A DNA stretch of 64,000 nt from the NCBI GenBank assembly GCA_038496445.1, contig JALMLS010000315.1, positions 62,001 to 126,000 of the forward strand, given 5' to 3'. Made by a program: the position numbers and the translations under genes. Every line of letters begins with the position of its first letter. Within the stretch, counting starts at the first letter, position 1. Shown here piece after piece: positions 3,276 through 8,970 of this stretch. The stretch is from Trichosphaerium sp. ATCC 40318 (lineage: Eukaryota > Protista > Tubulinea). Under the pieces are notes generated by a model, which did not search any database, was not told the DNA's origin, and worked only from the letters and a program-made list of their open reading frames with translations.

Positions 3276-4275
3276 ATGACAACAGAAGAAGATAATATGC
3301 TTAAGCTATACTCAGTGGCAACACCAAACGGACAAAAAGTAGGCATAGCACTAAAAGAAATGGGTATTCCATTCATAGGTAACAAACAACACGCCAAAAC
3401 ACATTTTGGTGAAAAAGCGCACCGTTTTAAAAATAACCACTCGGTTGCTTCAACTCCCTCTTACTATTTTTTCAAGGCCATAGAGTTCATGTTGGCCGTG
3501 GAGAGCAGTATAAACCGGAATTCTTAAAAAAGAACCCGAATCACAAAATTCCAGTTATAATCGACCCGAATCTACCAGGTATGTACTTTTCTACGCGCAT
3601 TGTATTGTTTACGGATGTTTTAAACTATTTTGTGTCTAAAACGATAAAAACAGCATTTTTAGGTTCGTAGTTTGTATTCCGTATCCTTGACACTCTTTTA
3701 GATGGTCCAGAAGTAAAATTATACGAGTCTGGAGCGATTATGCTTTATTTAGCTGAAAAATCCGGAAAATTCCTTTCACAAGATCCAGTAAAGCGAAGCG
3801 ACACAATCAAGTGGTTATTTTGGCAAAACTCTCAGATGGGTCCAATATTCGGTGAGTTTCATAATTCCTCTTGGTTATTCACTTACTTTATTTTGCGATT
3901 CCAGCTCAATTTGTTCACTTTGTTACTTTCGCCAAAGAGAGAAAAGAGTACAGTATAGCTCGTTTTGGCAAGGAGACTCACCGGATTCTTGGTGTCTTGG
4001 ATAATCACCTTAAAGGTAGAAGGTATATAGTAGGTGATGAGTACTCTATTGCTGATATGTCGGTCATCCCGTGGTTGAACACAATGTCACTTAAGTATGG
4101 AAAAAAAAAAACCAATACAATCTGTTGTTTGTACTTACGTTGCTTAAGGCTCAAGAGAGTATTACAGAAAGAAACAGACAAAGGATGGGAATATCCAAAC
4201 ATAGACTCGTTCCTTGATCGTGTAATGGAGCGCCCAGAGACTCTTGAAGGCATCAGAGTATTGCCTTTCACTTAA
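3276..4275 (+). CDS. Glutathione S-transferase, Nu/Ure2-like class (YfcG/YghU-like)
   Basis: LYSVATPNGQKV (TPNG), NPNHKIPVIID, YESGAIMLYLAEK, WLFWQNSQMGP, YSIADM across 5 exons. Confidence 0.92.
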
Positions 4276-4472
4276 GTCACAACAGCCTTAAAATTTGTAC
4301 AGTTTGGTAAAAATCTGATGTTAAGTATTTGTGGGGCGTAACCTTGTCTAGTCATAGCCTCAATAAAAGCACCTTTTTATTTGTTTTTGTGAGCTACTGC
4401 TCCTTTGATTTAAAAGGTCATACAGAAAGGGTGAATAACATATGAAGTGACAAGTTATTTAATCAAGTATTG

Positions 4473-7400
4473 CTATTCCATGTTGGCTTGCATGTACCAG
4501 TAATTTTGTGTTGTCACCATGCTATAGAAATTAACAGCGGTGTGTTCTATACGCTTATCATGAATATCTATTATGAGCGCTAAACCCGGTGATTCAACAC
4601 AAAACTTGTGAAAACCTGGCATCTTTGAAAGTAACAATCCACCTCTAAAGCAAGAAAAGTAAGCTCTTGAAGGTTGTACCACCTCCATTAAAACATTCAC
4701 TTTAAAAAATTTTACCTTACGACATCATAAGGATCCTGCAATGAGTTTCTGATATTAAACGAAATGCCAGCCTTAAAAAACAATCAGTTTGAACGCAACA
4801 TTTTATGGATGTGACAGAAAAAAAAAAACGTTTACTTTTTTGAGATCTTGGGTTAGGCTGCTTCTCATTTCGCTGGTGATACCTCTGCCTATATAGATGT
4901 TATACATAGTAGGTTATATCAAAAGGATTTAACTCGTTACCTGAAAGGACTATCGCATTCCACAATTCTTCCTGAATTGATGATGCACATTTTTCTATTG
5001 CAGATTTAACAGCATTGGCATAATCTTCTCCCACTATTATTACAACTGCATCTTTAATAACGGCTCCACAATACACTAAATGGTGTTACTAAAAAAAGTT
5101 CCACAGATTACTTACCTGGTGCTACACACCGGACTTCGTGACCAAGAGATATGACAACACCTACATATTATTAAACATCTTTTTTTTTTTAGTTCAAGGC
5201 CAAAAGCACCATTTGTCAATCCATGATTTAGAAGTATGAGTGTGGCCGCATTAGCTATAGATATACTAGGAATATTACAAGTAATAAATAGGATATTCTT
5301 TATAGCCATTTTGTGTTTCTTCGACCAACCTAAATGAAGAGAGTAAGCATATTTGGTTAGTAACTTTTTCGTGTTTGTTTACCGGTTGGTGGCTCGGCAA
5401 TCAATAATGGATGATGGTTAGGTACTCTTTTCCATTCACAAAACATGCCAGCGATAAATTCTGGTAGTGTAGAGCTTTCAAAAACAAAACGTTAACAAAC
5501 AAGCAAGTTTTGGTTTTGATAAAAAAATCACACCCATCAACAACGTTTCCTTCTTTGGTGGTCCTAATAATAATTATTATTATGACTTTATAATAGGAAC
5601 CTTATTTTTAAAAAGGTGTCCATCTTGCCAGTTTTTTGAGGAAGGTAGAGGAGAGCCGTAAATATTTATCTCAGTTTTTTCCAAAAAAAATAAGAATGAA
5701 TCAGACTTCACGTGCCTGTGTTGAATTTCTTTTGGATGGTTTTGCTCAATATCTTCTCCTATATAGTATCTACTCCATTTTATCCTACGTGTGTGCAAAT
5801 CAAATATACTAGTACCAGTGAATTAGACAAAACATCTTTTCAAAAAAAAACTAGGAAAAGAAGTGCAATAAAAAACTGTACCGTGGCGCTTTTGCTACAA
5901 TTGCTTTTATTTCTTGGAATTGCTCTCTATCAGTTCTAGTTGTGCATAAACCACCTTTGATAGAATAGCTTCCAAGATCAAATACAGCTACAACAAGAAA
6001 AATAAATAACAAGCAACAATACAATTTCTGTACCAAATTCAAGGCCCTTGCTTTTGCTCAGACCTTCAACAATACTGCGTTGCTTGTAGACACTATACCA
6101 ATCTTTCACTGCAGGTTCAATCTAAACCAGTTAACATAAAGACCATTCAAAAGATCCGTGTGAGTACTTTAAGTTGCCCTTTAGCATTTATTGCTCTCAA
6201 ACCACCTACTGCATTATTCCATCTCTTCTTGTATTTATCACTCCATATACTGCCATCCCTTGCAATAATATAGTACACCTTGTACAAGTTTAGCAATAGT
6301 ATAAAATAAAGAAGTATAAAATAGCTAATACCCTTGAAGTAGCAAATACTGAAACAACTTCTTTCGGAGAAAGATATTCAAAGATCATACAATATAATTC
6401 TATGGGCAGAGGTAAACTATCAAGTTGTTCAAAGTCTATCATTTATCATAAGTATGTAAGGCAAGCTATTAAAAATAAGGTAGTAGCAGTATTAGTACCA
6501 GAAACATCAATGGCTTCATGTTGAAGTTTTATTGCTTTTCTGTAAGTTTCAATAAATCCTTTTGTGTCTCCTGCTTCTTCAAGATCATATGCCTATAACT
6601 TGTTTATTCTCGAGTCTCCCAGATATATTTCGTTCATACCTTGTTGTAATAGAAAACTGTCTTCAAATAACCTGGATCTTTTGTAAATCTATTGGACAAG
6701 GACGTGGCAGATTGGTCAACACGCATAAACATAATTTCCGTTCTGAAAATATATTTCACACCCTAAAAAAAAAAGTCACGTTGGTTACCACATAACTAAG
6801 ACGCTTGGGCGTTTTTTGTTTACGAATGTGTACCTTAATAACAGGATCTCCTTGATGTAATACATTGTGATTAAACACAAGTGCAGTACCTGCTTTAGGG
6901 CTAACTTTGACTGCTTCTTCATCACCATCATAAAACACAGTATTTCCCCCTTTTGAAGAATTGTTAACCCAGTTCTCAAATAAAGTACCAACCTTCGAAA
7001 TCATCGTTCAGGTAGACAACAACAGTAAAAACACTGCACTCGTCATGACGAGGAACCCAAGGGCCATCGATATGCTTGTTAAATGACCCACCTTTAGTGT
7101 ATTTTCCAAACTAATAAAAAAAGAAATTAAAACAAAGTCAATTGTAACCATTCTACCTTAAAACACTCGTTCAACCGAGATGGACGCCATAAACCACCAT
7201 TACCGAATCCCATTGGGCGAATTTGAACATCAGATCTGGTTAAAGTGCCCTGTAAAAAGTAAGGAAGTTAAGTTACGAATAAGCAAGAAAAACCAGAAAG
7301 CATAATTTAGTTAAATGACGTGACCACAACGTACTTCCAATCGTTTCCAAAGACTATTTGCTAAACTGTCAGATAGTATAATAAGCTGTTCATTGGATCT

Positions 7401-8478
7401 ATAGTCTTTAGGAAACTGTTTCTTCAAAGATTTCCAACCAATCTTCTCACACTTGTTTATGTAATAATCACACTCAGTCTTAGACATAATACCATCCACA
7501 GTGAAGCACTTTGCACCAGGTACTTTAAGAGATCTACGCTTTACTGTTGCCGGTTGTAAAAGAGATGCTGGAGTTTTTATACGCTTATACTTATTGCCAG
7601 AAGTAACAACCATGTCTTCAACAGTTATGTCCTTACAACACAACTTTTAATGAAATGCGAACAAAAAACCAATCAAAACAAAACTATACCTCTTCTAGTA
7701 CAGGAGGGTTTAAGAGTATTTCTCCAACAGTCTTCAGTTCATCTCCTTGTGGAATCCTATCAAAGAAAAAGGAGTAAATAAACGAACAAGCTCACAAGCA
7801 CACTCTGTTTTAAATCCAACATTAATTTTTGTTTCATCGACTTTTAGTCCTGATAGCTATTTAACGTACTGTTGGAGAGGTAACTGCCAAACGTGATACT
7901 TTCTACTGGATGCATTTGAACCTTCAAAAAATTAAACAACTTCTATTAACAACAACAAGCTTACCAGCTTTACGCAACAAACGCAGTGCATCCCATTGCT
8001 TTGCCAAGCATGCAACTATAATTATATTCAGTACTTTATTCAATATACTGTCACGTGCTTTCAAAAGGAAAAGGCCATAAACTCGAATGTAAATTGATAT
8101 CGGCACCACAACCAATAAGATAATCGATTACTTCTACATTGCCCTAAATTGCAGAAAAAAACTTGTTAGCTGTTTCTCGTTAACAGCGCATCAAATGCTT
8201 TTAAATTGACTCTCACCAGAGCACTTGCTATGTGAAGTAGCGTTGGGCACTGTTTGTCTTGCTTGTAGTCCAGTTTTAGCAAAGTACGGAGTTTGTTGTA
8301 TGCCGCTGGAAGACACGGATATGGCTGTATGTTTTTGGGCGTTACAACGCTGTTTACGCCATCTACATCGAAACTTAATGGTAGAAAACAAAAGAGACAC
8401 CACAGTACGTTTATTAACCCAAACAGTAGCTAAATCCACCGTAAATTTATCTAGCGGCTTTGAAGTAGCACTTCCCAT
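4473..8478 (-). CDS. Multidomain protein: N-myristoylation motif, ankyrin repeats, 2OG-Fe(II) oxygenase (P4H-like), F-box, divergent actin-like domain
   Basis: Phase-consistent exons: MGSATSK; TLLHIASALGNVEVIDYLIGCGADIN; FNKHIDG..VVYLNDDFEGG.T.F..LVFNHNVLHQGDPVIKGVKYIFRTEIMF; LPLPIELYCMIFEYLSPKEVV; AVFDLGSYSIKGG, HPLLIAEP, GVVISLGHEVRCVAPV, EELWNAIVLSG, VRGGLLLS. Confidence 0.85.
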
Positions 8479-8584
8479 TTTAAACGTACGCCGTTACCGT
8501 TGTCGAAAGTAACAGTCTTAAACAGCAACAATAACAGTACAATTAGCAGGCTTTAAGGCCAAGTAGTACGTTTAACTTCTAGGG

Positions 8585-8970
8585 TATATGCAAATTCCCA
8601 GCCAAATATCCACCCAAATTCTCCTACGCTTTTATCGCTTATTCTAATTGTAATGGGCCTGTGGCTTGACTGCGTAAATGACCCTGATTTTGATTTTAGC
8701 AGCATATTTGTAATTGCATCAAGACCTGACAGTTGTGGCAACAGACCAGAAACAATGAACGTTGGTATGGTGCTTGGTATTACTTTTGGTGTTCTTTCCT
8801 TGGTATGTTATTTTGTTTTTGGTGTGGTAGCAATTGTTGACTTGGTGATAGGTAGTCATTGGTCTTCTTGTTATTTTCTTTGTTCCAAGGTTTGAGACAT
8901 GCAATTGAACCATACTTTACATAAAGCAACATTTCTTCTATGCGCATTGTAACAAACAACAAGATTTAAG
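8585..8970 (+). pseudogene. Possible remnant of a single-pass membrane protein C-terminus
   Basis: Cys-containing segment then VGMVLGITFGVLSL|VVIGLLVIFFVP TM segment; frame disruptions and no upstream exons. Confidence 0.3.

Follow-up and report, generated by a model that had tools for sequence, protein, structure and literature searches.

Known oxygen-linked protein degradation relies on separate proteins, a hydroxylase and a ligase adaptor (PHD and VHL, or PhyA and Skp1). The idea of an F-box fused to a 2-oxoglutarate (2OG)/Fe(II) oxygenase already has characterised examples, namely human KDM2A and KDM2B (FBXL11 and FBXL10), which are F-box proteins with a JmjC oxygenase, and Dictyostelium JcdI/Fbxo13. 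Arabidopsis ARP8 is reportedly a nucleolar F-box-actin-related protein. JcdI combines its F-box, through which it binds Skp1, with a JmjC dioxygenase; its Km for O2 lies in the physiological range and the recombinant protein was soluble only together with Skp1 (PMC9485057). A JcdI F-box mutant still shifted the O2 set-point, showing that the O2 phenotype does not require the F-box. The level of JcdI varied with Skp1 modification, and the F-box may control the level of the enzyme itself (PMC9485057). Here we describe a gene in a 64,000-nucleotide stretch of DNA (the window, numbered from its first letter) from the amoeba Trichosphaerium sp. ATCC 40318 (assembly GCA_038496445.1, contig JALMLS010000315.1, positions 62,001-126,000). 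On the minus strand, between 8478 and 4473, it encodes a protein with a prolyl 4-hydroxylase (P4H)-type oxygenase, a TPR-like hairpin, an F-box and an actin fold. Judged by their sequences, proteins with these parts in this core order form a conserved, uncharacterised family.

One expressed gene of 25 exons

The minus strand from 8478 to 4473 is without a long open reading frame (ORF) and reads as a succession of short exons bounded by GT and AG. As a preliminary description of this DNA had pointed out, the gene is hidden from an ORF view. An initial GT-AG gene model was built by hand and then checked against RNA. The 99-residue exon 7335-7631, used as the query of a profile-free search of 1.8 billion representatives, returned a 100% identical protein of 837 residues (P0001), encoded without introns on JGI contig L001 (2,710 nt, sample 3300016894, coding sequence 80-2593). 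L001 aligns to 8557-4357 of the window (minus strand) in 25 exons, with eight single-nucleotide polymorphisms (SNPs) and one 3-nt indel. These differences (about 0.3% over 4357-8557, three of them altering amino acids) mean that the RNA and the assembly do not represent the same haplotype or strain. The product of the window allele has 838 residues, read from an open frame with a single terminal stop, and departs from P0001 by V19I, an extra Q61, N721D and L774S.

RNA over the gene was otherwise available from a single run, X1, whose assembled contigs were aligned to 4300-8700. One spliced contig of 1,559 nt spans 6952 to 4469 and links the C-terminal half of the oxygenase with both the F-box and the actin-like part, all introns of the hand-built model being removed. 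A second contig covers about 7756-6990, and its 11 loose terminal letters match the 3' end of exon 7921-7870; the first four exons are without X1 coverage. The exon structure proposed at the outset held overall, apart from exon 3, which in L001 runs to 8059, ends at a GC donor and adds eight residues.

The five modules that the preliminary description had placed in one frame are thus all present on the minus strand at the coordinates given there, and a single transcript, seen whole in L001 and in part in X1, covers them all rather than ending between them. One expressed 25-exon eukaryotic gene encodes the whole protein:

4357-8557, minus strand: mRNA, 25 exons; 24 introns, each 40-152 nt long (22 GT-AG, 2 GC-AG), from L001 and the X1 joints
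4473-8478, minus strand: coding region, ATG at 8478, TAG at 4475-4473
8478-8409, 8362-8217, 8143-8059, 8015-7965, 7921-7870, minus strand: coding exons 1-5
7756-7690, 7631-7335, 7249-7157, 7110-6993, 6949-6834, minus strand: coding exons 6-10
6762-6640, 6592-6499, 6435-6332, 6278-6168, 6121-6034, minus strand: coding exons 11-15
5987-5882, 5808-5716, 5563-5534, 5474-5383, 5329-5210, minus strand: coding exons 16-20
5160-5116, 5075-4941, 4888-4836, 4771-4716, 4644-4473, minus strand: coding exons 21-25
8016-8058, minus strand: intron 3, GC-AG, donor GCACGTGA, from L001
5564-5715, minus strand: intron 17, GC-AG, identical donor octamer GCACGTGA, at 152 nt the longest intron, from L001 and X1

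Conceivably, a chimeric assembly, or two or three genes lying side by side, might have been misread as one protein. For example, if intron 6498-6436, at which the C-terminus of the oxygenase meets the F-box, is read through, an in-frame TGA is met at 6448-6446, followed by an in-frame ATG at 6442. However, this intron is spliced out exactly in both RNA assemblies (joint 6435|6499 in X1), and the same three-domain order recurs in dozens of proteins of other species, of which several stem from transcriptome assemblies; the chance of such an artefact is negligible. A separate F-box-actin gene starting at ATG 6442 was likewise considered and rejected, as the RNA splices across the site.

Introns 3 and 17 are the only non-GT introns of the gene, and both are GC-AG and open with the same octamer. 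Upstream, an open frame of 81 codons (8553-8798, minus strand) ends in a stop at 8555-8553, 2 nt upstream of the first base of L001 (8557). It has no Pfam match; should it be the final exon of a gene lying upstream, that gene and this one would almost abut. On the other side, a convergent gene occupies 3276-4275 of the plus strand; its product has the C-terminal domain of glutathione S-transferases (PF00043, 42 bits), and the last ORF of this gene ends at 4275. With L001 ending at 4357, the two 3' ends are within about 80 nt of each other.

Oxygenase, F-box and actin-fold modules

Pfam was run on the whole of P0001 with curated cut-offs. On single exons, the oxygenase, F-box and ankyrin matches were sub-threshold only and the actin-like exons had no match; a PDB search with one actin-like exon returned noise only. 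An AlphaFold2 (AF2) model built on 38 long homologues (alignment A1) has a pTM of 0.73, with residues 171-800 confident and residues 1-170 and 803-837 poor. Folds were compared with 48,161 PDB representatives using VIA Z scores. A feature search of the ESM Atlas was uninformative, giving only ankyrin look-alikes, all below 0.8. Catalytic residues are numbered as in the window protein; H300, D302, H358 and K368 are H299, D301, H357 and K367 in P0001. The modules are:

8458-8478, minus strand: MGSATSK, fitting the N-myristoylation consensus (Gly2, Ser6, Lys7) in a pattern test on the mRNA-fixed start
7914-8285, minus strand: two ankyrin repeats, residues ~50-120, exons 2-5; Pfam Ank_3 (24.9 bits against a cut-off of 22.3, residues 63-88) and Ank (22.9 against 21.1, residues 63-89)
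6715-7562, minus strand: P4H-type oxygenase domain, AF2 pLDDT mostly 86-98; 2OG-FeII_Oxy_3 (PF13640), 46.2 bits against 27, residues 287-370
7066-7074, minus strand: His300-x-Asp302, predicted iron ligands, invariant in 38 of 38 homologues
6855-6857, minus strand: His358, predicted distal iron ligand, invariant in 38 of 38 homologues
6754-6756, minus strand: Lys368, predicted to bind the C5 carboxylate of 2OG, invariant in 38 of 38 homologues
6515-6702, minus strand: TPR-like helical hairpin, residues ~386-432, linking oxygenase and F-box
6231-6409, minus strand: F-box, residues ~447-488, split by intron 6331-6279; F-box-like (PF12937), 28.9 bits against 24.3, residues 446-487
4563-6052, minus strand: divergent actin-fold domain without subdomain 4, residues ~533-809; Actin (PF00022), 75.7 bits against 27, best stretch residues 538-711

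Residues 180-380 are modelled as a double-stranded beta-helix (pLDDT mostly 86-98) that matches solved P4Hs with Z scores of 16-17. The matches include Chlamydomonas P4H-1 (2jij; Z 16.8, 23% identity), OGFOD1 (Z 16.6), the PBCV-1 collagen P4H vCPH (5c5t; Z 16.3, 28% identity) and human P4H-TM (6tp5; Z 16.1). Dictyostelium PhyA (6t8m; Z 14.7, 17% identity) ranks below these algal, viral and collagen-type enzymes, and human PHD2 (2y33) has a Z of 14.3; the identities of PhyA and PHD2 are 16-17%. The oxygenase is nearer to the collagen, algal and viral P4Hs than to PhyA or PHD2, a result that does not specifically favour Skp1 as the substrate.

The HID motif, the distal histidine and the basic 2OG-binding residue noticed in the preliminary description are real: H300-I-D302, H358 and K368 do not vary among the homologues, and Arg372 is nearly invariant as well. 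Lys368 sits ten residues past the distal histidine, the same spacing as for the lysine of collagen P4H; PHDs bind 2OG through an arginine, not a lysine. This invariant predicted Fe/2OG site is the signature of an enzyme kept active, and the oxygenase is probably catalytically active. The nearest bacterial relatives of the oxygenase domain (P0157-P0160) are myxobacterial proteins of about 750 residues, e.g., from Stigmatella erecta, in which it is accompanied by domains of the adenylate-kinase and aminoglycoside-phosphotransferase types; their annotation reads nucleoside monophosphate kinase.

The hairpin following the oxygenase was recognised by a match to consensus TPR designs, by AF2 helices at residues 385-431 and by its conservation in A1. 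The F-box, also called earlier, scores above its Pfam cut-off and aligns to the F-boxes of FBXW7, FBXL5, FBXW8 and SKP2, all of them SKP1 partners. Its Trp483 (P0001 numbering) is invariant in A1, and the protein is likely to be a Skp1-binding F-box protein.

At the N-terminus, MGSATSK obeys the N-myristoylation consensus (PROSITE PS00008), as first described, and its start codon is fixed by the mRNA: it is present in L001, with an in-frame TAA 18 nt upstream. The ankyrin exons are confirmed by L001. Ankyrin repeats had been noted before and are indeed present, but there are only two of them, the second visible only in a sub-threshold Ank_2 match at residues 49-119, where AF2 confidence is low.

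PDB actins match the C-terminal domain in sequence searches with an E of ~1e-13, and the Foldseek match to actin has an E of 6e-14, but identity to actin is only 15-20%. By fold, residues 532-808 are closest to Arp4 of INO80/NuA4 modules (Z 18.3 and 17.4 over about 260 aligned residues), compared to Z scores of 14.6 for actin and 13.8 for Arp3 of the Arp2/3 complex. The actin-like domain of the preliminary description is therefore present by Pfam and by fold, but incomplete: subdomain 4, about 88 residues of actin (roughly 192-279), is not represented. A short connection likewise replaces subdomain 4 in about half of the family, and the other half has a segment of some 100-120 residues there. 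The DSGDG of the phosphate-2 loop reads SLGHE here and is degenerate across the family, so the domain has neither the four subdomains nor the intact phosphate loops of an ATPase-competent site. It occupies the position C-terminal to the F-box at which F-box proteins carry their interaction domain and is followed by a lineage-specific tail of about 30 residues. A minimal actin fold of natural origin, devoid of subdomain 4, is thereby available in the family, and is of interest for what such a fold can do in the absence of polymerisation and ATP hydrolysis.

In the preliminary description, the actin fold was taken for a bait that mimics G-actin and captures actin-binding proteins for hydroxylation and degradation. 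Conventional actins do top the sequence searches, and direct reading of the sequence finds the hydrophobic C-terminal helix pattern partly kept. A mimic would, however, be expected to keep actin's surface, and a domain so far from actin in identity, closer to Arp4, without subdomain 4 here and in about half of the family, and with a phosphate-2 loop degenerate in all, would make a poor one; we hold a bait function to be highly improbable.

Arp4 and Arp8 bind HSA helices, and KDM2B-PRC1.1 and CBF3 are F-box/Skp1 assemblies without a cullin. The protein might similarly belong to a scaffold outside SCF ligases, its Arp4-like domain binding a helical partner, its F-box assembling with Skp1 in a cullin-free manner and its oxygenase modifying a component of that complex. 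The higher Z scores of Arp4 than of conventional actin, the degenerate ATP site and the reportedly nucleolar F-box-Arp protein of plants, ARP8, would agree with this. Yet, for a diverged domain, Arp4 leads actin in Z by a modest margin only, and the N-myristoylation motif of this protein and of its relatives in sponges speaks for a location at a membrane and not on chromatin; we find such a scaffold quite unlikely.

A family in distant eukaryotes

With Pfam matches counted at E <= 1e-3, 2OG-FeII_Oxy_3 is present in all 38 sequences of A1, F-box-like in 29 and Actin in 22, and the same domain order recurs in many long homologues. The invariant columns are almost all in the oxygenase, by far the best-conserved part. 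Members are found in a sponge (Ephydatia muelleri), a choanoflagellate (Choanoeca flexa), Heterolobosea (Naegleria lovaniensis, Willaertia magna), chytrids (Nowakowskiella, Rhizophlyctis), the amoebae Physarum and Dracoamoeba, and the dictyostelids Cavenderia, Tieghemostelium, Acytostelium, Polysphondylium, Heterostelium, D. citrinum, D. firmibasis and D. discoideum. The protein of D. discoideum (P0168, ACTFIR_000488) scores above each of the three Pfam cut-offs, and the members from Choanoeca, Dracoamoeba and Physarum are transcriptome-assembly sequences, i.e., fused transcripts. All members are labelled hypothetical or named after one domain.

In the literature we found no description of a P4H-type oxygenase combined with an F-box and an actin fold, in line with the preliminary description, and the paper on the Dictyostelium actinome names neither an oxygenase nor a hydroxylase. 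The architecture is nevertheless not a one-off, its oxygenase-F-box-actin core being conserved across several eukaryotic supergroups.

The N-terminal extension differs among homologues, with ankyrin repeats here and WWE or rhodanese domains elsewhere. The N-terminal glycine recurs in the nearest relatives (P0002, P0005, P0007, P0151 and P0152). Among 157 matches starting with methionine, 17 begin with Met-Gly and nine of these, including several nearest relatives, fit the myristoylation pattern; lipidation looks recurrent in the subfamily.

In a tree of the oxygenase domain, the protein groups with choanoflagellate and sponge members (99/94 support) and not with the dictyostelid clade, a placement that points to old paralogy or transfer. 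No relative was found when viral contigs were searched with P0001, and A1 contains no block of sufficient conservation to serve as a query there. This result weakly disfavours a recent giant-virus origin, and the 24 introns and the eukaryote-wide homologues speak against it as well.

Three Ephydatia muelleri proteins (P0151, P0152 and P0155) are encoded in a cluster (G019450, G019456 and G019478) on one 8.2-Mb contig, and two from Dictyostelium cf. discoideum (P0072 and P0169) have adjacent locus tags (ACTFIZ_002477 and ACTFIZ_002478). An Acrasis kona protein of 516 residues (P0177) is annotated as 'actin' and has F-box, 2OG-FeII_Oxy_3 and Actin Pfam domains, its name probably reflecting one of the three only.

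Proposed mechanism and known systems

On balance, we lean towards a family of F-box proteins with an oxygenase-hairpin-F-box-actin core that would work as follows. The F-box would bind Skp1, and the actin-fold domain would most likely be a non-polymerising module for binding partners or substrates, given its substrate-receptor position and the loss of subdomain 4 and of the ATPase loop. The oxygenase would be active and hydroxylate a protein held in the same complex, tying an activity that depends on O2, Fe and 2OG to an SCF-type ubiquitin ligase. In this amoeba, the lineage-specific N-terminal extension, with its N-myristoylation signal and two ankyrin repeats, would probably put the complex on a membrane.

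Several observations weigh against this proposal. F-box-like is missing from 9 of the 38 homologues and Actin from 16, and the C-terminal half is highly divergent. Lipidation is, from the 17 Met-Gly starts in 157, not a trait of the whole family, and the N-terminal 170 residues are poorly modelled. L001 and X1 have four SNPs in common at which both differ from the genome assembly; they are thus probably from the same strain and not independent sources of RNA. In the literature, no experiment on any family member was found. Finally, as the F-box of JcdI is dispensable for its O2 phenotype, an F-box beside an oxygenase need not mean coupled ubiquitination. Hydroxylation may be functionally coupled to ubiquitination, but we regard this link as doubtful.

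JcdI also provides the main alternative, in which the protein is an enzyme under regulation and not an adaptor bringing hydroxylated substrates to SCF. The oxygenase would be the working part, and the F-box would mainly hold the enzyme on Skp1 for solubility, or set its level. This is how JcdI appears to behave, given its need of Skp1 for solubility, the effect of its F-box mutant on the O2 set-point and the dependence of its levels on Skp1 modification (PMC9485057), and the concentration of invariant columns in the oxygenase agrees with it. On the other hand, an actin fold has been kept C-terminal to the F-box across very distant lineages, a position that is typical of a substrate receptor and unnecessary for pure self-regulation. 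We consider this alternative possible, rather than probable.

Extending the F-box adaptor proposal, the family could represent an ancient single-polypeptide equivalent of PHD/VHL, a prolyl hydroxylase built into an SCF substrate receptor, in which hydroxylation of a client on the pseudo-actin domain licenses its ubiquitination and which N-myristoylation sites at the membrane in some lineages. As a whole, this seems unlikely. If true, it would be an oxygen- or metabolite-gated degradation switch older than animal HIF signalling, present in Dictyostelium, Naegleria, chytrids, choanoflagellates and sponges; some lineages with family members lack, to our knowledge, the animal HIF pathway. The family is of interest chiefly for its conservation, its apparent activity and its occurrence in a model organism that is amenable to experiment. 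For D. discoideum, Skp1 interactomics and O2-dependent development assays exist (PMC9485057), and with an orthologue in this species the coupling hypothesis is directly testable there.

Compared to known systems, the collagen-type, algal and viral P4Hs share the His-x-Asp...His triad with the oxygenase described here and are its best fold matches (Z 16.1-16.8, 23-28% identity). These enzymes are secretory or lumenal to the endoplasmic reticulum (ER), or stand alone, whereas the N-myristoylation motif and the F-box suggest a cytoplasmic setting for this oxygenase. Arp4, the best structural match of the C-terminal domain at 15-20% identity, differs in that the domain here is without subdomain 4 and fused to an F-box; a chromatin role would be by likeness only. 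In ARP8, as here, the F-box stands directly N-terminal to a divergent actin-family domain, and we know of no oxygenase, ankyrin or myristoylation motif in that protein. A word-based search with residues 437-837 returned the query only, being too insensitive for this divergent half, and is uninformative on kinship with ARP8.

JcdI and KDM2A/B, like the present protein, have a 2OG/Fe(II) oxygenase and an F-box in one polypeptide. Their oxygenases are of the JmjC type, whereas this one is of the P4H type (PF13640) and has an H-x-D...H...K site. JcdI has its oxygenase on the C-terminal side of the F-box, and JcdI and KDM2A/B are without an actin fold. PhyA and PHD2 belong to the same fold superfamily and provide the conceptual tie to ubiquitin ligases and O2 sensing. 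In those systems the hydroxylase and the ligase adaptor (VHL or the Skp1 partner) are separate proteins, whereas here a P4H-type oxygenase with an intact site is fused to an F-box and a pseudo-actin, an arrangement that has been retained in Amoebozoa, Heterolobosea and chytrid fungi as well as in a choanoflagellate and a sponge.

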